NCBI RefSeq assembly: GCF_963853765.1
Contig: NC_088855.1
Location: 51,832,001-51,896,000, forward strand
From: Magallana gigas
Lineage: Eukaryota
Direction of reading: 5' to 3'
DNA: 64,000 bases
Made by a program: the position numbers and the translations under genes. Shown one piece after another: positions 2,246-31,488 of this stretch; the stretch's first letter is position 1; every line of letters starts with the position of its first letter. The notes beneath the pieces were generated by a model, which made no database searches, was not told the origin of the DNA, and was given only the letters and a program-made list of their open reading frames with translations.

Positions 2246-5200
2246 TTATGAAGCTGTAACCTCCTTTGCTGGTATAAATCCAGAATCTCCAAGCCTACGG
2301 ATCGACACCCGTCCGGACGGTCGGATTGTGACCCATGTGATACTGGCGTGGTCTAGACTAATCCTCAACCATGCCTCCGGGGGAAACTGTAGAGCCCTGC
2401 AAACAATCATGAAGGACATTTTACACATGCATTTGTTAGTCCTTATATAATTCATGTATATTAAGATTCAAAATAAAAAGGAGTTTCTGTTTACCATTAT
2501 TTAGAGCTTGTTTAATGAGAACTTGGTATTTGGATATCCAAGGAGAGCATGTACTTGTACATACACATACATATTTGAACATGTACTACAGGACTAGCAT
2601 TTTTTTTTGATATGCAGTACTAAAAAGGATTCTTGAAATTGTTAAAGAAAGAATGCTGAAATTACATTACCTAGCCAAGTCTCTTATTCCTAACTGAGAG
2701 TGAGAGGGTTAATGAATTTGATGTGATGTACATGGACACCCCTTTCCAACCACCAATAAATTGATTGCCTCTAACCAGAGGCGTGTTCAGCAGAGCTCTC
2801 CGCAAAGTTTGTATTGCAGGTATGGGGAAATTTGGTGAGCGCTCGTTCTGTTGAACAGGCCTCTGGTACATACCCTGGTATTAAACCCTAAACAATTCTT
2901 TAAATCCCTTTATAATATTACTAGTCCTGTCAAAAACATATTTTGTGACCTATAACCTGGCTCCATTACTTACAATAGAGTTCATTTCAATAAATCACTA
3001 AAAAAATAATTGAGATGTACGATGGTATTGGGCTATCACTTACCTACATACAAAGTATCTGATAACATTAGCATGACAAACAACAATCTCATAGCTGTCC
3101 TTTTTCTGCTCAACTTCAGCCCTGTGGAAAAGCTTTCTGAAGGCTGTCTCTATTCTGGGACCATCCTGAAAGAACTGCTAAAAATAAATAGAAGAAATTC
3201 CAGGTAAAAGTCAATCACCTGAGATCCCTTGGTTAAATGATATATAAATCGGGATCACATGGAACTAGTGAAGGTATCATACAAACTGTTCAGGTTTCCA
3301 ATGGCCGATTGGAGGTTCCGGTGGGATGGGGGCTCCTTCGCACAGGTTGGGCTCTTTTTCCCAGGTGAGCTGGGGGAGGTGTTTGTGTATAATTGCTGCT
3401 GTCTCCACGGCTCTGGTCATTGTAGAAGATATAAGCTTAGTGTATTCAATGTCTGCCTCTTTTAACCTCTTTCCACAGTAGTCCGCCTGTTTTTTCCCTA
3501 AACAATATGTAATAATTTAAAGTAAAGTATCTGGATATCTGGACTAAAAATTTAGAATAAGATCGATGCATAGCAACAGGGGCAAGGAGGGTGGGCCTGT
3601 CCCCCTTTTGATTTCAATTGATTTTTTTGGGGTATAATTTCCATATTTATTGAACTGTCCCCTCCTGGGAGTCCCAAGTTTAATATTTGAACCATGTAAT
3701 AATATAAGGAAAAATTTATTTGTTGCCTAATTCAAAATAAACTAGCCATAGATAAAGGATGCTTTTAACAAATATGATAACTAATACAGCACAATGAAGT
3801 AGTCTCTTCCCCCCCCCCCCCCCCCCCAATCCACTCCACACTTTTTACATATTCAGGATAATGGGCTCGATCCTGAAAGATAACTTGTATTTTTAATTAC
3901 CTAGTTTAGTAAGATATCTCTCGGAGTCCTCTTTACCATCAAGGTTGTACTGTCCATGTCGAATAAGAAGCAGGTGACGGGTGGCCGTTGGTCTCTGTTT
4001 CTCCAACTCATTCTCTCTGTTTTTTGTCTCTTTTTCTGATGAGTTGCTTTTTAAGGGTTTTACAAGGCTCTCTGGATCCCTCCTTGAAATCAAACCCAAA
4101 TAAAATAAAACAAAACATACATAATTCCAATATAAGTTTATCGCTACATACAAATTTTAATAATTACGCCTTGCTATTTATTATCATTTAGCGCTAGATG
4201 TAAGACCCCCGGTAACTTAAGTTTAGACCAATCTCCCAAACGTGTACTGTTGTAATAGTCTGTTTGAGATAAAATACCCAAAATAGGATATAAATTGTGC
4301 AAAAATTTAAAATTTTTTACTTATAGTCTGTCCCGAGTTTTTGCTTCCACCACTTTTCGCTTGATATTTTGATAATAATTAATACCTTTGTGCTTAATCT
4401 ACATTCATCCAATAATATGAAAAATGTCCATATTATCTGTTTTGAAACGCCCCCTCTACCGCTTCAGGTTTCAATACACATCCCAAAATAGAAATTCTAC
4501 GGGAATTTTGCATTGCATCAGCCATAATCATGATAACTAAGCCTGGTTGAAAAATTGTGCAAGGTGTCCCGAGTACTTCCGAAAGGGGAAAAGATGTAAA
4601 CATTTCCCATTATAAATCTCCGTAAGAAATTTAATGTTTTCCTTCCTGTGAACTTTTATGAGTGAAAAATGATAATTTGTCAATGAAGATATCTTGGGTA
4701 TTTTCCATTCGATTTCAACTGTACTTCTTTGACATGTATGAGTATTTTTATTAAAAATCATCCAAAAGTGATGGAAGAAATAAATTGAGACAGACTATAG
4801 TATAAATTTTAAAAATAAATCTGCATAAATTTATATTAAATTAAACAACTTTTGGTTAGCAAGTTTTTCTATAAGCCTATATAGTTTGTCAGATTGTTCT
4901 CCAAGAAGTTTTGGATGTACTGGGGGTCAATCTCTGCAACAGTACGCAGTAGGGTTACAAAAAAACTCTTGTATACCATTTGTATGCCAAAAGTTATTAG
5001 AATGCAGATTTGACTTTTTCTTGGTAAAATAGACATTTCTAAATAATATTTGCACTTCAAATTTATATTCCATTTGGGATATTACATCCCAAACATACTA
5101 TCATATATCCCATTTGGGAGGTTGGTCCCAACCTGTTAAAAGATTTTATGGCGAGGAAATTCGAATTACGAACCGGTCCCAGTTGTGCTCCCATCTTACA

Positions 5201-18468: not shown

Positions 18469-20935
18469 CTAATCTTTGTCCCTTTTCCACACTTCAAAAA
18501 GAAAAAAAATCATTTGTAATATTTTTGCTGTAAAGAGATATCATGCCTGTCAGTTACTTTTGAATCTTTGTAGGACCTAAAAACATCTTCCATAAACAAC
18601 ATTAAGTCAAATAACCTTATTTAAAAATAACAATGCACACAAAAAAATATTCGTCATCGTTTAAATTTCGTTAAATTTAATATCGTTGCCAATTTAAGAG
18701 TTTGCCAATCCAAAACAAGTATTTAAAATCTCTGTTAATTAGATAGAGTTTTCATTCCTATCTGTCTATGGGGCGAATTCAAGATGGGGCGAAAACGTTT
18801 GAAAATGTAGAAGGGCAAAAAAACCAATGGGTACATTAATCTTTTATGCTGTGTAACATTTTTTATATTTAAAATTCTAGTTTAGGTCGTCTTACTCTCA
18901 ATCCTAGCGTTGTATTCCTCCAGTCGTTCCTCTCGTGTTGTGCGTTCCCAGCTGTTATTTTTGTTCTGCATCTCCTCCTCCTTTTGATTATCTGATGCTG
19001 TTAACACAAATATGAAAACACTTCTAATTTTAAGATTTTTAGGATGAAGGTGAACAAGACTTCCTTCTCAATTCCACGTATATATTTCTTTCAATTCTAA
19101 TGAGAAATGTACTTACATGATGATATACTCTCTGCGGGTATGAGGAACCTTCTTGGTAAAAAGGCACCACTATGACCACTATGCTTGTTGCAGTGTTCTG
19201 TGTCAGTCAAAAAGTTGGTAATTATTAGCAATACTGACTGTATATAAGGTTATTATAATCTTCACTCATTTTTTTGAAACAAAAAGAAATTCTTACAATA
19301 TTTGCCACACGTTAGATAAACAGCTTTGTCAGAAACATAGATAGCATATCCCCTTGTAGATTGTTAAAATTGAATGAACCGGAGAGTAACGCGCCATGAA
19401 CACCGTGAAGAAAACCTGTTTTGTTTTGTAATTATAAGCAATGTCTATTTGAAATTCAATACCCTGATTTAAAAATATGTTGAAAAAATATCCTTATAAA
19501 AAGTTAAAGATATTGAAAAATAGTCAAGTTATTGAGGTGATTATAAAAACAACACTTTTATTTATATTTCTAATTCTGGCTGTTAAATGCTTCCAAAGTG
19601 TTCTCGCTAAAGAAAACAAACCAATTAATACATTTTTATCTTTTATTTATAAATCAATTAAACTAGGCAAAGAATTCTTGGACTAATCCATCAAAACAGA
19701 TCAAATACACGTGCTGGTTCTTTTTATTTTTATTTGCATCGCACATGCGATAGGTAGTTTTTCTGCGCTGCCAAAAATATTTTTATTTGATAAAAATTTA
19801 GTATGATCGAAATATTTTGCAGAACCCTTGTCTACTTTGGTAAAGGTATATAACTTATTAATAGAACATGCTTGTTTGAAAATTTCTTTGACACTATAGA
19901 TCTATTACCTAAATGTTTAGAGTATGCAGCAATACTGTGCCAGATAAGTATGACAAAAATTATTTTCCTTTCAGATAATAATTTCTACAGTTAAATATAC
20001 CACCTGTCAGGTGAGACACACTGAAAACAAAAGTGGCTATATACTCAAAACAATTTATGGTCTCTTATTGGGTAAAAATGGATTTTCATGAAACAATATA
20101 TTAGATTAATGTCCATTTTAAATGGATGCAAAAATACCCCCCCCCCCCTTGGCACTGGCATAATTATCCGGCATAGTGTTGTATACATTTATTTACATAT
20201 GCATATAAGTAAACAAAACTTGCTTTCCATCCTTGATTTGTACTGTTCCAAGCGCTCCTCTGTCGTGCGTTCGCGGCCGATGTGTTTCGGAACGTCGTCA
20301 GACTCTTTTATATCCGATGCTAAATGAAAAAGATAACCACATGTGTTATTAAATATATACGAAACACCATAAACATACCTTACATGAACATCTCCTATTG
20401 CTTCTAACAGCCCATCAGCAACCTTTGACATATTTACAGTGTTTTCTGATACAAATAGCGCCGCTTATTTGGTATGTATTGTTATGTTCTTTCACGATCT
20501 TATTACCAAAAAATGTACATGCATAAATATCGACGATACAATTTTTAAGAGAAACAGCAAAACACATGCCTGAAAAACAATGACAAACATTGATAACTGA
20601 CTATTTGAACAATTGTTATTTGACTATAGTTTTTGCAATATTTTACTTTCTAATCTGGCATCATGTTGCATTTTTCGTTCCTCCCTGGCAATGTCCCTTT
20701 TAATGATTTTGTTTTGCATCTCTTCGTCGTTCTGGTTGTCAGATGCTAAGAATATAAAAAATGATGACCAGGTTCAGACAGTGGCGGCTCCATAGTGGCA
20801 TCAGATTACTTACGCAAGCAGAGTCCAAATCAAGAAGATACATACATGATGAGGTTGTTGATGGGGGAACAAGAAATCTCCGACGTAAAAAGGCGCCATT
20901 ATGTCCATTGTATCCATTGTATCCATTGTAGGAAT
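18469..20935 (-). CDS. Array of paralogous phase-1 exons; candidate C-terminal extension of the T-box gene or a separate small gene
   Basis: A1 20935-20846 (90 nt), B1 20745-20647 (99), B2 20319-20224 (96, GC donor), A3 19197-19117 (81), B3 18997-18896 (102), putative terminal exon 18491-18469. All five array exons are 3n long, phase 1/1, open and bounded by AG/GT(GC). A1 resembles A3, and B1, B2 and B3 resemble each other in translation. Confidence 0.65.
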
Positions 20936-21442
20936 CTGAATGGGCAAGGTTTTATTAAAAGTACACAACACTCTTATATTTTATTATCAAAACGATGCAA
21001 TGGAATTCGAAAATTTGAAAACAAAGTTGGAACCTCTGCATTTTCGCTTAAAGAGGATACCTCCCATTTCCCCTTTAGTCTTGTCTCATAACGAAATGAA
21101 AGAAAAAAGACACAGTATTCTGAATTATGACATGGAACAATCATAACTGTAGTTTGTCGTAGAGTTAGTTAAAAAGAAGATATGTTCTTGGCGAAATATT
21201 AATGTTAAGAAAGAAGGTATTAGTGTTTGATTAGTGTCTTTAATCTTTCTTTAAATGCATGGAATTCGTTTACAAAGTACGGTGATGTTAAAGATAAGCT
21301 TTGAAATTTCTTCTTATTAACTCTCTATGACAAATTCAAAATACTTGCTTTCAAGTGATTGCAAATTCAAAATACTTGTTTTCAAGTGATTGCAAAAAAA
21401 GTAAACGGAGGCAAAAATGAGGAAGCAAACCGACATTGTCCA

Positions 21443-22922
21443 TTAACTCAAAAGAGTGCAAAAACCTTGTTCACAGATGTTGCCGTTCACGTGTGGAAAG
21501 ATGGGTAAAGGGACGTTCATTTCAATGAAGCTCATGGCTAGAGGACCTGTAAATACAAGTACAATGATGTCTAGAAGATCGATGTTATATTAATTGATAA
21601 TGCAGGTAAATACAGTTTAACTTGTATACTTTACGGAATTCTTATAACAAACTACAGTATACATGTATTTCACGACAATTATTTTCAACAATTCCCCTTC
21701 TGTATGCAATCACTTTGTGCGGATATACATAAAGTGGTTTACTATATTTTTTTTAATGAACCTACGACGTAAACAAATTCTTTAAACAAACGAATATTTG
21801 TTTAATGAATCTATGACGTAAACAAATTCGTTACATAAGCTGTTGGTAAGTAATTAGTTTTCATTCTGGAGTAGAAAAATTAAAAATCTGTAATAACGAC
21901 CACCTCCCTGCCTGAAATCTTTCAAAAAGAACTATGAAACCTACAATTTTGGTGAAAAACTTAAAGATCTGGTCTACAAAATCATGAATTCAGTTTTCCT
22001 TTTAGGTGTGTGGGAGTAAAGAAGATAATTTTTAAACACTATATGCATTAACACCTATATATCCATTTTGGCCCTGCCCTAGAGTCAAAACCCATACTCC
22101 AGGGGACATGAAATTTAAAATTTTAGTAGAGGACTTCCTGGTAAACATAATTATGAAGTCAGTTTTTCATACAGATGTGTGAAAATAGAGAAGAAGATTT
22201 TTAAACATTATATGCATTAACACTACATGTATATCCCCCCCCCCCAAGTCCTGAACTCCTGACCCAGGGGCCATGAATTTCAAAATCTTGGTAGAGGAGT
22301 TAGTGGACATCATAACCATGTATTCAGTTTTTTGCCCACATGTGTGGGAGTAAAGAAGAAGATTTTTGAAAATTTGGCCTTGATTTTCTAAGATTTAATA
22401 CATTTTTACTATATGGCCATATTGGCCCCACCCTAGAGCCCGAACCCCTGACACAGCGATCATAAATTTCACAATTTTGGTAGAGGGCTTCATGGACATC
22501 ATAATCATGCATTTAGTTTTTAATAAATATACATGGGAGTAGAGAAGAAGATTTTCCAAGATTTAATACATTTTTACTATATGGCCATATTGGCCCCACC
22601 CTAGAGCCTGAACCCCTGACCCAGGGGCCATGAATTTCACAATTTCGGTAGAGGGCTTCATGGACATCATAACTATGCATCCTGTTGTTTCCTCTCGCAT
22701 GTGTGGGAGTAGAGTAGAAGATTTTTGAAAATTTGGCCTTTTTTGCATATTTGGCCCCGCCCGTGGCACCCCGGGGGTGGTAGAGCCATGAATTTCACAA
22801 TTAAGATTCTTCTTACCATAGAGATGCTTTACACCAAAAATGGTAACGATTGGCCAGGTAGTTTTCAAGAAGAAGGTAAAAATGTAAAATTGTTAACGCA
22901 CGACGACGGACGAAGACCAATT

Positions 22923-22959
<37 letters not shown>

Positions 22960-25900
22960 AGGAAATGAGTTGATAAAGGGTTCTTACTTGCTAAAAATTT
23001 ATACCACAACTGCATATCTGCCATTGATATATCTGTTTGAATGCCCTTTTTGTTATTCGTTTCCGATGAGACATAGCCTGTAAACAGAAGCAATGGAATG
23101 AAAGCAAAAAACAATAGAATGTGGATATTGAAGATATTACTGAATCACCACTGAGAGATGCATGTAATATAGAAAAAATCTAAACATCAAATGAAATTTA
23201 AATTCTACAGAGTTAAAATTTAAATATAACAAACATTTAGGTTACTACGGTCATTTTATGTAAATATTTGACCAGCCTGATTAAACAGACTTCATTCTGA
23301 TTAATGAATCACGTAGTAGGAGCTGGTGTTAATATTATCAGTCTTTTTCTTTGAATGATTTTAATACATTTTAAATGGCATTCGAATACAATAAATGACA
23401 AAATCGAACAACTGAACCAGCGCTTTGCTGTGCATGTGGAATGTAATGTGTAACAGATTCATCAGGTAAAGTTTTCTCATTGAAGACACTTACTTGTTTT
23501 TGCTTTTTTATTTATTGGGGAAACGTCAATTGGAAGACTGAAATAAAAAATAAAGAAACTTTAGCTATAATATTCAGTTACCTTTTTATAATACTTTCAC
23601 AACAAATAATATACAGTTAAAATTACATGTAAGTCTAAAGTCCCGTTCAAAATACCGCCTCAAATTGTCACCGCGACCACTAACAAATTCTTACTGTACC
23701 GCAAGAGAACGAAAGACCAGTCATATCATATTTATTTTACGTCGTTAACTCTTTAACACAGTTAAATTACTGAATTGAAATGATGCAATCGTTATGACCA
23801 GCAGCGCAAGTGTCCTTAATCTACTGTTTTCTTATATAATTTTACATTATCGTTTATACCAATACATAAGTCGGTGTGAATGATTCCAAGAAACCGTATT
23901 TATTCCTCCCAAAAATGATTGTATCTTGACCGGAGGTTTGCCATGTCCAGTTTTTACAATAAAGTTACTTGATTTGAAAGTTGCATGTAAATTGCTGTAT
24001 AAATACCATTTTAAATATCCTTTGTGTAGAGTTTGTAAAAAGTTACCCGCTTTTAGCAGACATGAACTTTTGAAATGTAATAAAGTTTACAATGAGTTGA
24101 CATGAGTTCTTGCTTGATTAGGTATGAATGATTGGATCTTCATTCTAAAAAAGACCACCAAATCATTAAACATTTACATGAACATTTTTAGTCAGTTATG
24201 ATTTTACACAAATGTCGATCCAGACATGGAACTGTTAGTACCTTTTTACAGGATATCTAAAAGCCTTGGAATATGGGTTACTGTTTATTTTTAAGTCCGC
24301 AACCTTTCTGTTGTTGTAGGCAGTGACTGCAATGAATGTAGTAGCTTGGATGGGATACTCCACTACCGACACTTCGCCCCCCTTCTCATGCTTTACGAGG
24401 GAAATTCGCACCAAGTACTTCTGTTGGGTGTGGAGTGTAAACTGATTGGAAAAAAAATACATATTGCATATTTCAGACACAGGGATAAATAGGTTATAGT
24501 GAAGGCAAAATTAACCAGATGATCGGTGAAATGGGTGGCGGAATCCAATTGACATTGTATTATTTGGCAAAATGTTTTGTATATGCCACCTTAATTTTTA
24601 CGTTGTTTTGGTTTTTCATATGACATGGAGACCCCCCTGCCATTGTTTTAGACTAGTTTGTATATATGTTACCTTGGGATCTCCCATATTCTAAATGTGT
24701 ATTCATTAACGATGATTTTGTCTTACTTAGTCTTTAGGGAGATCCCGCTGCCTGTCTTAAATTAGGTGCTTAATAAGTCTGTTTATGGTTATCTGGGATA
24801 TCCTTAGTAGCTAAGGTTGTTTATTTGTAGTTGGTAGTTTATCTTCGTCATTAATAAATGACAATATTCATCAAATCATTACTTGTTGTGTTTTAAAGGT
24901 GTAAAAATTAACCGAGATGGAGCTGGTTTCCACATAAATATATAAGTACTAGTATATAAACTTATTTACCATGTCGATTTTGCAAAAATAATTTAAATGT
25001 GTGTTTACATTATTAAATAAATTGAAGATTGTATAGCAGCACTTATTGGGGTTTTCATTTACCATACAAATCGAAAATAATGTAAAAACGTTATCATTTT
25101 AAATCGTACATCAATCTTAAAATATGACCAAAAAGAATAAGGAATAATTACATGAGAACCCATATGTATATCTATATAAAAGTCAATGAACGATTCATCA
25201 TTACCTGTGTATTGATGATGAATTTGTAATGTACTTACTATTCCCGATTTTGATCCAGGCCTGTTTGAGAGCTTTACTTTTTCAAAGGATATTTTTCTGG
25301 CCATCCACTCCGAACCGATTCTTGGCGAATCGGGATGTTTAAAAGGCTGTGTCTTGAATTCATGTTCTTTTTTCCCAATGGGCACCCATTTGTTGTTTAA
25401 AAACTTGAAACATTTATTGCTTGCTGGAATGATGTCAAACATAACGTCGTATAATCCAACAGGATCCAAACCTCTCAATGAAAATTCCACGTACGGGAAC
25501 ATTCTCCTGAAACAAAGGTTCGGTAAACATTGATCTATTCCATTTGGTCGTACCTTAAGAGATGAGAGGGGCCAGTATCATATACAAAGACTTGATCAAA
25601 AGTTCACAAAAGGCAAGGCAATGCCGAAAAATCTCCGTATAAAGTCAGTAACAAACAAAAAGGTGTTCTGTTTTGTTGACAATATAAATATTAGGGATGT
25701 ACATTCATTACAGAATTACCAATCGAATAACTTGCAACCCGTTTAGTAAGAAAATACGAAAAAGTTAAGAATATGTCGAGTATCAAATAATGTTTCAATT
25801 TAATGTATAATCACTCTTATCAGAATCAATATATTCTTTGGATGGTCTTGAACCCAGTAAAGATACATGAACAGATTATGGTTTAGTTTCTTCGTTTGCT

Positions 25901-28900: not shown

Positions 28901-31488
28901 AACATTAAAAAATGTTACATGCGCAAAAGTTATGCGCGTACGGTTCGCTGTAGAATTCACGTTATTCCTATATAAAAGCAGTAAAATTTTCTTAAAAATT
29001 AAGACATTCAGTATAACAAAATAAATAGTGCCTGTTTGGGAGGATAACAGTTGAAATTGACACCCCTCGAAAACCATTGTCAACCTCCGCTTCGCGTCGG
29101 TTGACAATGGTTTTCTCGGGGTGTCAATTTCAACTGTTACCCCTCCCCCCCCCCCCCCAAACAGGCACTATTTATATAATGGCTTCTAAAAACATCTTTT
29201 TTAGCCAAGGTGACTATGTAATGGATAAATAACGAGATGGTGTTGAATAGTTTAGAGAAAACAGGAGGGGGTGTTTTCTCTAAACTATTCAACACTATCG
29301 AGTTATTTATCTTACTTTAAAAAATTCCCCGATTTGAACCTCTAAGAAGCATTGACCCATTCATATATCCAAATGTGATGTCATACAAAAGAATAATTCA
29401 AGCAATACCATACACAACAATAGCCTAACCAAACACACCTTTTTAATCATGGACGAGTGAACAGGTGCGCGTGTTATAGAAAACCATACCGCTGTACTGA
29501 GCAGACATAGATTTAGAAGATGAATTTTTTAACGCAAAGTACACACTTGTACAATGTATAATAGAGATCCACAATTCCTGGAAAGACATGGATACCGTTT
29601 GAATGATATTTTAAACTTACAAGGAGAAAGGAAAAATCAGAATTTTGACGTCAATTAACAGACGATGATTTATCTAAAAAATTGATAGGAGTCTTATGAA
29701 GTCATAGTGCGACAATATTTCCTATATTGTTAAACTAATTAGAAGGAGTGATATGGTTCAAGGTTCAAAGAGGAAGTCTAAAAGTTTATGAAAGTGATTT
29801 ATATGTGATCCCGAATCTATCAAAATTAAGAAAAGGAGATATTTCTGTTCTGCAAAAAAATTTATTCGTGGCTTATCGGATATACATTTATGGATGACAA
29901 AATTCTGTTTTATAAATTTGGATTTATGTTGGAAATACACGTTTCAACATTTTTTCAGTTTTCTTTGTTTAATGCCCAGTTGGATATTTGAATATCCAAC
30001 TGATTGACGGTTGGATATTAAAAATATCCAACTCCTATCAGTTGGATATTTATATATCCAACACCTGCTGGTTGAATAGTGAAAATAAACGTTGACTGAA
30101 TACAATGGGTGACGTCATAGAAGTTTTTTAATTCCTCCTATTCTCTCTTCGATTTTTTTTCTTTAGTAAATAATAAGATTTAGAAGGACAGAAATAAATA
30201 AACGAAACGTTATTTTTTGCTAGCAAACCAAAAATCGATGTTTCAATATATTAATAAACACATTTAGCTCATCCTAACCCTCAAGTCAGTTAGTTTGCGA
30301 GTTACAAGCCCAATAGCAAAGAAAAAAGTATTTCAAGATTTTGATAAACATTCATCATATGATAATAAATCCCGACTCTAACCATAGAACCACATGCTAA
30401 TAGAATCTCACACTTACCATAGAACTGTACTTTAATACAAACCTACTCTCACCATAGAGCTATATGCTAAAAGAACTCGACTCTTGCTATATAGCAACAT
30501 GATAAGAGAGCCCGATTCTTACCGTACAATCATATGATAATGAAAACCAAACTAAGTCATGGAATCATATAATATTAGAACACCCCTCTAACCATAGAAC
30601 CACGTGATAACACAGACCGACTCTAAACATAAATTCGGAATCAGATAATTATGGAGCCCGACTCTTACCATAGCACCACATGACAACGAAACCAAACTCT
30701 AACCATAGAACTATATGCTTATAGAACCCTGCTCTTAACATAGAGCCAATAAACCCCATCATCTGAATTTCATAATGTTCTTGCTCATTATAACTATGCA
30801 CTAAACACAAAAAGGAGATTATTATTGATCCATTTTCCAGGTGTTTACATCCATATACAACCACGTATGCTCTTTGTGGTGGGTTTTGTTCGGTTATTTG
30901 AACTATATTCCCCACTATATCTCCACAAAACTGACACAGATAATTTGGTCAAGATTGGAAAGCAGTTTTCAAACAGACGCAAAACGTTCGTCCTTTAACA
31001 CTCGACAAACGATTAATACAACAAATGTTTTCAAAAATTGTTCAAATCTGCAAAAATGTTAAAACATCCATATCTTACCTTCCTGTTCTGTTGATAATCA
31101 TTTCAGTCCCAACTTCTAAAAACGTGTACCACAGTTTGGCCTCCATCAGAGACATCCTGATTGGTCCATTTGTGAGCGGTATACAGTTATCTTTGCCGTC
31201 GACCATGTCCTCTGTGAGCTTCATCTGCATGCTCTCCGACGTAAAGCTGTCAGAATATCCAGACGAGATGGAGTTGGAGTAAATCTGTATCTCCATATCA
31301 CTGGACTGAGGATCCATCTCAGTCGGCGAGGACGAGTTCGAAAAGGGAAATGATGTATTTGAAAAGGATCGATTTGTAGACCCATTCATTTCGGACGCAC
31401 TTGACACTCTATTTCCAAAGACTGGAATCTTTGGTTTTTTGTCGCTGGGATCAGTTTCCTCGGCAAAAGTGTCCTCTTTTTCCTCCAT
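21443..31488 (-). CDS. Divergent T-box transcription factor (about 371 aa short model, 6 coding exons)
   Basis: Exons 31488-31079, 25506-25239, 24441-24242, 23537-23494, 23077-22988, 21546-21443, phases consistent (1116 nt). T-box motifs LWYTF..[21 protein letters not shown].EWM...ISFEKVKLSN, FIAVTAYNN, LKINSNPYSKAFR. 5'UTR acceptor at 31522. Subfamily not assignable by eye; the last exons are less certain than the T-box exons. Confidence 0.9.
21870..22960 (+). mobile_element. Helentron/HINE-like element carrying a tandem array of about 166-bp units (resembles the oyster Cg170-type satellite)
   Basis: Unit landmarks near 22101, 22267, 22458, 22624, 22783. 3' end has (CGA)n, then palindrome TAGGTCACCTGAGTGACTCAGGTGACCTA (22927-22955) and AAAAA. 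The 5' boundary is uncertain. Confidence 0.8.
28431..29180 (+). mobile_element. Head-to-tail dimer of a 370-bp non-autonomous element ending in a long hairpin
   Basis: Copies 28431-28800 and 28801-29180. Each ends in an imperfect palindrome of about 135 bp (AATAGTGCCTGTTT...AAACAGGCACTATT) with apex CGCTTCGCG. Confidence 0.8.
30370..30760. repeat. Degenerate minisatellite of about 39 bp
   Basis: About 10 recurrences of ACTCT(A/T)ACCATAG-like cores at roughly 39-bp spacing in T-box intron 1. Confidence 0.7.

Follow-up and report, generated by a model that had tools for sequence, protein, structure and literature searches.

Where does the coding sequence of a T-box gene of the oyster Magallana gigas end: at a stop codon just behind its exon E6, or beyond an array of short duplicated exons further downstream? 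The question is raised by a stretch of 64,000 nucleotides (nt) of contig NC_088855.1 (assembly GCF_963853765.1, positions 51,832,001 to 51,896,000 of the forward strand; hereafter the window), at whose positions 18,469 to 20,935 an initial annotation, made from the sequence alone, had pointed to two types of repeated module, A and B, in the order A-B-B-A-B. All positions below are window coordinates, and all gene parts are on the minus strand. We conclude that the array probably supplies the 3' coding exons of the T-box gene upstream of it, a member of an ostreid-specific subfamily, and that it encodes an internally duplicated C-terminal tail.

The array starts with module A1 (20846-20935, 90 nt), in which a YNG-coding microsatellite is followed by GAFLRRRFLVPPS and which is predicted to be disordered. 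It continues with B1 (20647-20745, 99 nt), a predicted charged helix that differs by one synonymous change from a twin copy of the gene on chromosome 2, B2 (20224-20319, 96 nt), A2 (19117-19197, 81 nt, GAFLPRRFLIP) and B3 (18896-18997, 102 nt), which is the module closest to the ancestral B, carries REERLEEYNARIE, and is 85% identical to its counterpart in Crassostrea virginica. The coding part of the terminal exon (18469-18491, 23 nt) specifies (M)WKRDKD and then a stop, the position of which is conserved in C. virginica. All array exons have AG acceptors, each preceded by a pyrimidine-rich tract, and the five internal ones have lengths divisible by three, phase 1/1 throughout, and GT donors with the exception of B2, whose donor is GC (A|GCAAGT) with an alternative in-frame GT 9 nt downstream. 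The homologous donor in C. virginica is GT, so that a real donor changed to GC in the gigas lineage. Within A1, the YNG-coding repeats (20896-20930) are a microsatellite with a 9-nt unit and 3.9 copies (Tandem Repeats Finder, TRF); the twin is one unit shorter (a 9-nt in-frame gap) and C. virginica is shorter still, so the start of A1 is variable in length. Because all tail exons are multiples of three with phase 1/1, duplication is frame-neutral, and so is the skipping of any module.

Upstream of the array, exon 1 (31079-31488, start codon at 31488) encodes at its 3' end the opening residues of the T-domain, LWYTFLEVGTEMIINRTGR, corresponding to positions 2-26 of the Pfam T-box profile; it ends in the donor GGAAG|gtaaga and is 75% identical at the nucleotide level to exon 1 of C. 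virginica. Exon 2 (25239-25506) holds the core of the T-domain (PF00907, E=1.4e-24) and exon 3 (24242-24441) its end (E=8.5e-15), and exons 1-3 together cover profile positions 2-181 of 182. They are followed by exon 4 (23494-23537, 44 nt, phase 2 to 1, LPIDVSPINKKAKT), for which a homologous 44-nt exon was present in a paralogue transcript, and by exon E5 (22988-23077, 90 nt, phase 1/1), which encodes a second LWYxFL-like motif, QTDISMADMQLWYKFLA. The short form of exon E6 (21466-21546, 81 nt, phase 1/1) ends in the weak donor CAAG|GTTTTT, which is identical in the twin and in C. virginica and is used by C. virginica models (…MCEQ|…). When this donor is read through, the frame stops at TAA 21443-21445, about 505 bp before A1. 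When it is used, the 12 pieces (exons 1-4, E5, short E6, the array and the terminal exon) join into a single open reading frame (ORF) of 527 amino acids (aa) with one terminal stop, in which T-domain and tail are continuous. The initial annotation had anticipated much of this layout, namely five exons with lengths divisible by three and phase 1/1, the A and B peptides, the freely skippable modules, the internal E6 donor giving an 81-nt phase-1 exon, a distance of some 500 bp between the T-box stop and A1, and an isoform of roughly 527 aa, and all of these were recovered; the one point it had overlooked is the GC donor of B2.

The same arrangement was found in a related oyster. Protein models were recovered by searching with a T-domain exon and then by a family search. 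The NCBI model of C. virginica LOC111127458 ('uncharacterized protein', P0162, 517 aa) reads T-domain-E5-E6-A-B-B-A-B-MWKRDKD and thus shares with the window gene the T-domain, E5, E6, the order of the modules and the terminal residues; the two proteins align end to end with 74% identity over 470 aligned residues. P0162 differs from the window gene in a more upstream A1 acceptor, which adds residues, in the GT donor of B2, and in keeping an optional exon, 3b. For A1, B1, B2, A2, and B3 the identities between the window and P0162 were 69, 72, 58, 73, and 85%, and all off-diagonal values were lower. Each module is therefore closest to its positional counterpart, indicating that the five-module array predates the split between M. 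gigas and C. virginica. Moreover, the DNA alignment with the orthologous C. virginica locus (L011) was confined to exons, which formed collinear islands in the order A-B-B-A-B, one for each array exon except A1 and B1; these two lay in a single block together with the short intron between them and some 130 nt on the upstream side of A1. Homologous splice sites were seen for E5, E6, B1, B2, A2, B3, and the terminal exon, the exception being the A1 acceptor, which is not conserved in C. virginica, whose models use other acceptors.

An M. gigas protein shows the same connection in part. The UniProt entry K1PNN0 ('Brachyury-like protein A', P0163, 402 aa) has, like the window gene, a T-domain followed by E5, E6, B1, B2, B3, and MWKRDKD; unlike the window model, it skips both A modules, lacks exon 1, and extends B2 to the downstream GT donor (…SKSNHQF). 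Its E5 and B3 residues are those of the chromosome-2 twin and its B2 residues those of the window. In a protein search restricted to the tail, P0162 and K1PNN0 were the only long proteins that carried it, and the short ones were three isoforms encoded at LOC111127049, which is a second C. virginica locus, and a few unspliced ORFs from Logan contigs. The layout is thus already public: the complete form for C. virginica and a partial one, K1PNN0, for M. gigas. The translations of an array that the initial annotation had called hidden are real, but the array is not really hidden, because the annotation of a sister species already contains it.

Could these exons be open frames that arose by chance, or conserved elements without a coding function? 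The lack of RNA reads described below is the sole point in favour of such an explanation, and the pattern of substitution is codon-specific. Across the six tail exons E5, E6, B1, B2, A2, and B3 (177 codons), the proportion of synonymous differences from C. virginica (pS) was 0.73, which is saturated, and that of non-synonymous differences (pN) was 0.136. Between the window and the twin, a near-copy of the whole gene including exon 1 (L006 on chromosome 2; the window copy is on chromosome 3), nucleotide identity was 90-95% across exons and introns alike (blastn), with 3.0% divergence in tail exons and 6.0% in introns. There were 9 synonymous and 8 non-synonymous changes, and the ratio of their rates (dN/dS) was 0.21 (P=0.002 against neutrality). 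The three exonic indels between these copies measured 9, 6, and 3 nt, all multiples of three, and 6 of the 22 intronic indels had such lengths. In addition, the splice sites and the stop position are kept across species, and homologous exons are present in a real transcript, described next. We regard the chance or non-coding explanation as effectively refuted; the tail exons are under purifying selection, and the coding constraint proposed in the initial annotation stands.

The transcript came from an older paralogue. Three paralogues on chromosome 2 (L007, L008, and L009) have T-box exons with about 72-77% nucleotide identity to those of the window and introns that cannot be aligned, and each contains, 3.5-5.7 kb 3' of exon 2, a single B-like exon with a phase-1 donor A|gta. 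The acceptor and the phase-1 donor of this exon are clear in L007 and L008, and the donor alone in L009; the exact 30-residue peptide of the L007 B exon occurs in UniProt K1PYY2 (P0004). A Logan transcript contig (L010, 2798 nt), whose 485-aa ORF is uninterrupted, aligns to L007 in nine exons, among them the T-box exons, E5-like and E6-like exons, a 102-nt B exon preceded by an exon at the A position, and a terminal exon with the same beginning as in the window, TGTGGAAA. T-domain and tail were therefore seen on one mRNA for this paralogue, while the window locus had zero RNA depth in four runs. The MWKRDKD exon proposed as the last one was borne out both by the terminal exon of this transcript and by the stop position in C. 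virginica, and P0162, K1PNN0, and L010 all support the proposed attachment of the array to the upstream T-box gene.

The tail is a mark of a wider group of genes. The E5 motif QTD(I/V)(T/S)MAD..W..FL is present in window E5 (QTDISMADMQLWYKFLA), in L006, L007, and L008, and in proteins of Crassostrea, Saccostrea, and Ostrea. The end of the tail, in the window the REERLxEYNARIE end of B3 with its phase-1 donor and then the (M)WKRD terminal exon, is common to proteins of the same three genera, and the E, Y, N, and R of this motif were invariant in 10 aligned tails. The single-tail oyster paralogues (P0153, P0154, P0159, and P0158, auto-named TBX20-like, VegT-like, and T-box protein 12-like) share with the window gene the T-domain subfamily, the E5 motif, E6, and a B exon ending in EERLxEYNARIE that precedes a terminal MWKRD exon. 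Unlike the window gene, they have one A-B unit and longer ends after MWKRD (…SRSDNPEAMKK), and their A-position exon is weakly similar to A1 and A2 (24-32%). With the canonical T-box classes (Brachyury, Tbx20, VegT/Eomes, and Tbx4/5) the window gene has the PF00907 T-domain in common, whereas none of their C-terminal Pfam families matches its tail. The conflicting automatic names suggest a subfamily without a clear one-to-one relative among these classes. The tail was absent from the one Pinctada T-box relative examined (P0167), and on the sequences compared here the subfamily is found only in true oysters (Ostreidae). We found no published paper on the subfamily, the tail, or the LOC and UniProt identifiers; the C. 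sikamea genome paper merely lists T-box genes among regions under selection (PMC12021676).

Single A-B-terminal tails in paralogues and in other oysters point to an ancestral tail of the form E5-E6-A-B-terminal, duplicated in the lineage of the window gene. The ancestral subfamily tail would thus have comprised E5 (QTDITMAD..W..FL), E6, one A, one B, and a terminal exon starting MWKRD, and its A-B unit would have been duplicated internally to A-B-B-A-B before M. gigas and C. virginica separated. The resulting protein would have a DNA-binding T-domain followed by a tail in which disordered A linkers separate B helices that are long, charged and amphipathic; the final helix would close with the subfamily-invariant REERLxEYNARIE-MWKRD motif.

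Structure prediction agreed with such an organization. AlphaFold2, given the C. virginica tail and an alignment of 10 sequences, predicted the B modules as long helices, with predicted local distance difference test (pLDDT) scores near 90 both for B1 and for B3 together with the terminal residues, and the A modules as disordered (pLDDT <50). From B3 into the terminal exon, the residues L, Y, I, and W are spaced 3-4-3 along the sequence, which gives a single hydrophobic face on an otherwise charged helix. T-box factors carry activation or repression regions C-terminal to the T-domain, and by analogy with these we infer a regulatory or partner-docking role for the tail. Its function is probably cofactor docking or transcriptional regulation, and the repeated B helices may offer more than one docking site.

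Several observations weigh against the assignment of the array to the T-box gene. The protein searches turned up no current M. gigas model that has all five modules, and no known domain or structure matches the tail in Pfam-A, PDB sequences, or ESM Atlas: Pfam gave just a sub-threshold DDHD match (E=0.04, 14.5 bits against a cut-off of 28.3), the PDB sequence search one match without a significant aligned stretch, and ESM Atlas no usable match. Four RNA runs (two polyA and two single-cell, about 1% of each sampled) left every T-box and tail exon at zero depth. At LOC111127049, the second locus of C. virginica, the annotated proteins lack a T-box. Finally, the window copy has a broken version of the optional exon 3b and, with C. 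virginica as outgroup, shows 12 amino-acid changes of its own where the twin shows 6, a difference that is not significant (estimated two-sided binomial P ~0.24).

The window gene is silent or rare in the sampled RNA. The zero depth gives no verdict on splicing or on transcript starts and is not counter-evidence to them; since no exon is covered, both are taken from homology at this locus. Such RNA reads as did align were confined to intronic repeats at 21850-22960 and 20147-20180. The word shares of the RNA runs for the stretch were 0.13-0.22, and the intronic repeat makes up roughly 0.16 of it, so that these shares need not reflect a transcript.

The first repeat, in the E5-E6 intron (21850-22960), is a block of about 1.1 kb of diverged units of roughly 170-190 bp, recognized by eye and unflagged by TRF, which is shorter and unalignable in the twin. 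It attracted many reads, mostly in one orientation, most of which were 95-99% identical with loose ends; the imperfect identity and the loose ends indicate that they probably derive from other genomic copies. The second, in the B2-A2 intron (20147-20180), is a short repeat containing a G-run, and because both ends of its reads continue into unrelated sequence, these reads originate elsewhere.

Could the tail instead be made, solely or additionally, as a T-box-less E5-E6-A-B-B-A-B protein whose internal start lies in E5 or upstream of it? It would be a small helical regulator in its own right, and might vie with the full-length factor for shared partners. Such products are annotated at LOC111127049 (P0180-P0182), whose isoforms X2-X4 (201-234 aa) start at MNNEKGIQTD within E5, contain the whole tail without a T-domain, and are distinguished from one another by their choice of A1 acceptor and by whether they retain the intron between A1 and B1. 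Their start lies in E5 rather than in the interval from E6 to A1, and they may represent a twin locus whose models are truncated; the window E5 lacks the methionine in question (ETNNKKG). T-box and tail are, on the other hand, joined in the orthologue model P0162 and in the paralogue transcript, and T-box exons 1-3 are intact upstream in both genome copies. A T-box-less product, beside or instead of the full-length protein, is possible; we consider it improbable and rate it well below the full-length protein.

We also considered a separate start exon between 20940 and 21440 and rejected it. The sole ATG-started ORF in this interval (20974-21144) leaves a candidate donor in phase 0 and is therefore unable to feed A1, which is in phase 1.

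A further alternative is that the window copy is a silent, decaying duplicate whose coding appearance is due to recent duplication from a functional copy on chromosome 2. The state of exon 3b speaks in its favour. In the window it is reduced to a remnant (MKIQSFIPNQ..., 24102-24146) of the first 15 residues followed by a stop (tblastn), whereas the twin (L006 about 3671-3787) has all 39 residues, 100% identical to K1PNN0; the blastn alignment breaks at window 24096/24098, where about 115 bp of the twin have no window counterpart. Because the truncated exon runs into a stop, its skipping is obligatory in the window copy. The doubled number of window-specific amino-acid changes and the zero RNA depth point the same way, as does K1PNN0, which matches the twin over exon 3b, E5, and B3, though its B2 matches the window. 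Exon 3b is, however, optional elsewhere, being absent from the paralogue and other-species models P0004, P0005, and P0158, and skipping it keeps the frame, since its length is a multiple of three and its phase is equal on both sides. Moreover, the complete 527-aa ORF of the window is free of stops and frameshifts, its exonic indels against the twin all preserve the frame, its dN/dS is well below neutrality, and the excess of unique changes is within chance. We therefore regard a decaying copy as very improbable. The broken exon 3b and the excess of unique changes do suggest that, of the two duplicates, the one in the window may be more relaxed, though it is not visibly broken.

For the full-length T-box protein with its duplicated tail, a further feature concerns the choice between its two possible ends. 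The stretch immediately behind the E6 donor (21397-21465), which includes the read-through stop, is strongly conserved: positions 21411-21480, the first 15 nt of which are E6 coding sequence, are identical to C. virginica at 67 of 70 nt (~95%), in contrast to synonymous sites elsewhere, which are saturated between the two oyster species, and the stretch matches the twin at 86 of 87 nt. It showed no stable RNA fold (z-score 0.26) and is not present in the older paralogues. The stretch could be a candidate binding site for splicing control or an alternative-end element, and together with the weak E6 donor it may help to choose between a tail-less and a tailed product. In a more speculative extension, which we hold to be rather unlikely, the tail would be a switchable module, the weak GTTTTT donor and the conserved stretch setting either a tail-less end or one to three helical docking copies, with a T-box-less competitor in addition. 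If true, such a tail and competitor would together adjust how active this expanded, lineage-specific T-box family is.

The analysis fixes the gene model as an oyster-specific T-box protein of about 527 aa that does not end at the E6 read-through stop, and defines the conserved C-terminal motif REERLxEYNARIE-MWKRD for a T-box subfamily expanded in Crassostrea, Saccostrea, and Ostrea. It also provides a clean case in which internal duplication of symmetric phase-1 exons lengthened the tail of a transcription factor, and a handle on the role of lineage-specific T-box genes in oyster development. General principles are unchanged by it, and the gene-structure result is sound but fairly ordinary.

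Two minor observations concern the T-domain and its genomic copies. E5 repeats the opening motif of the T-domain after the domain itself (MAD.Q.WYKFL in E5 and MEAKLWYTFL at the opening), and the same is seen at L007 5783-5839 and L008 3331-3417; every paralogue and species examined keeps this post-domain motif, for which a short helix is predicted. In addition, exon 2 has 26 matches in the genome, and tandem T-box clusters are strongly expanded at C2:14.60-14.68 Mb, C2:20.99-21.09 Mb, and C10:7.29-7.34 Mb, where some copies in the C2 21-Mb and C10 clusters carry stop codons in exon 1 or exon 2.

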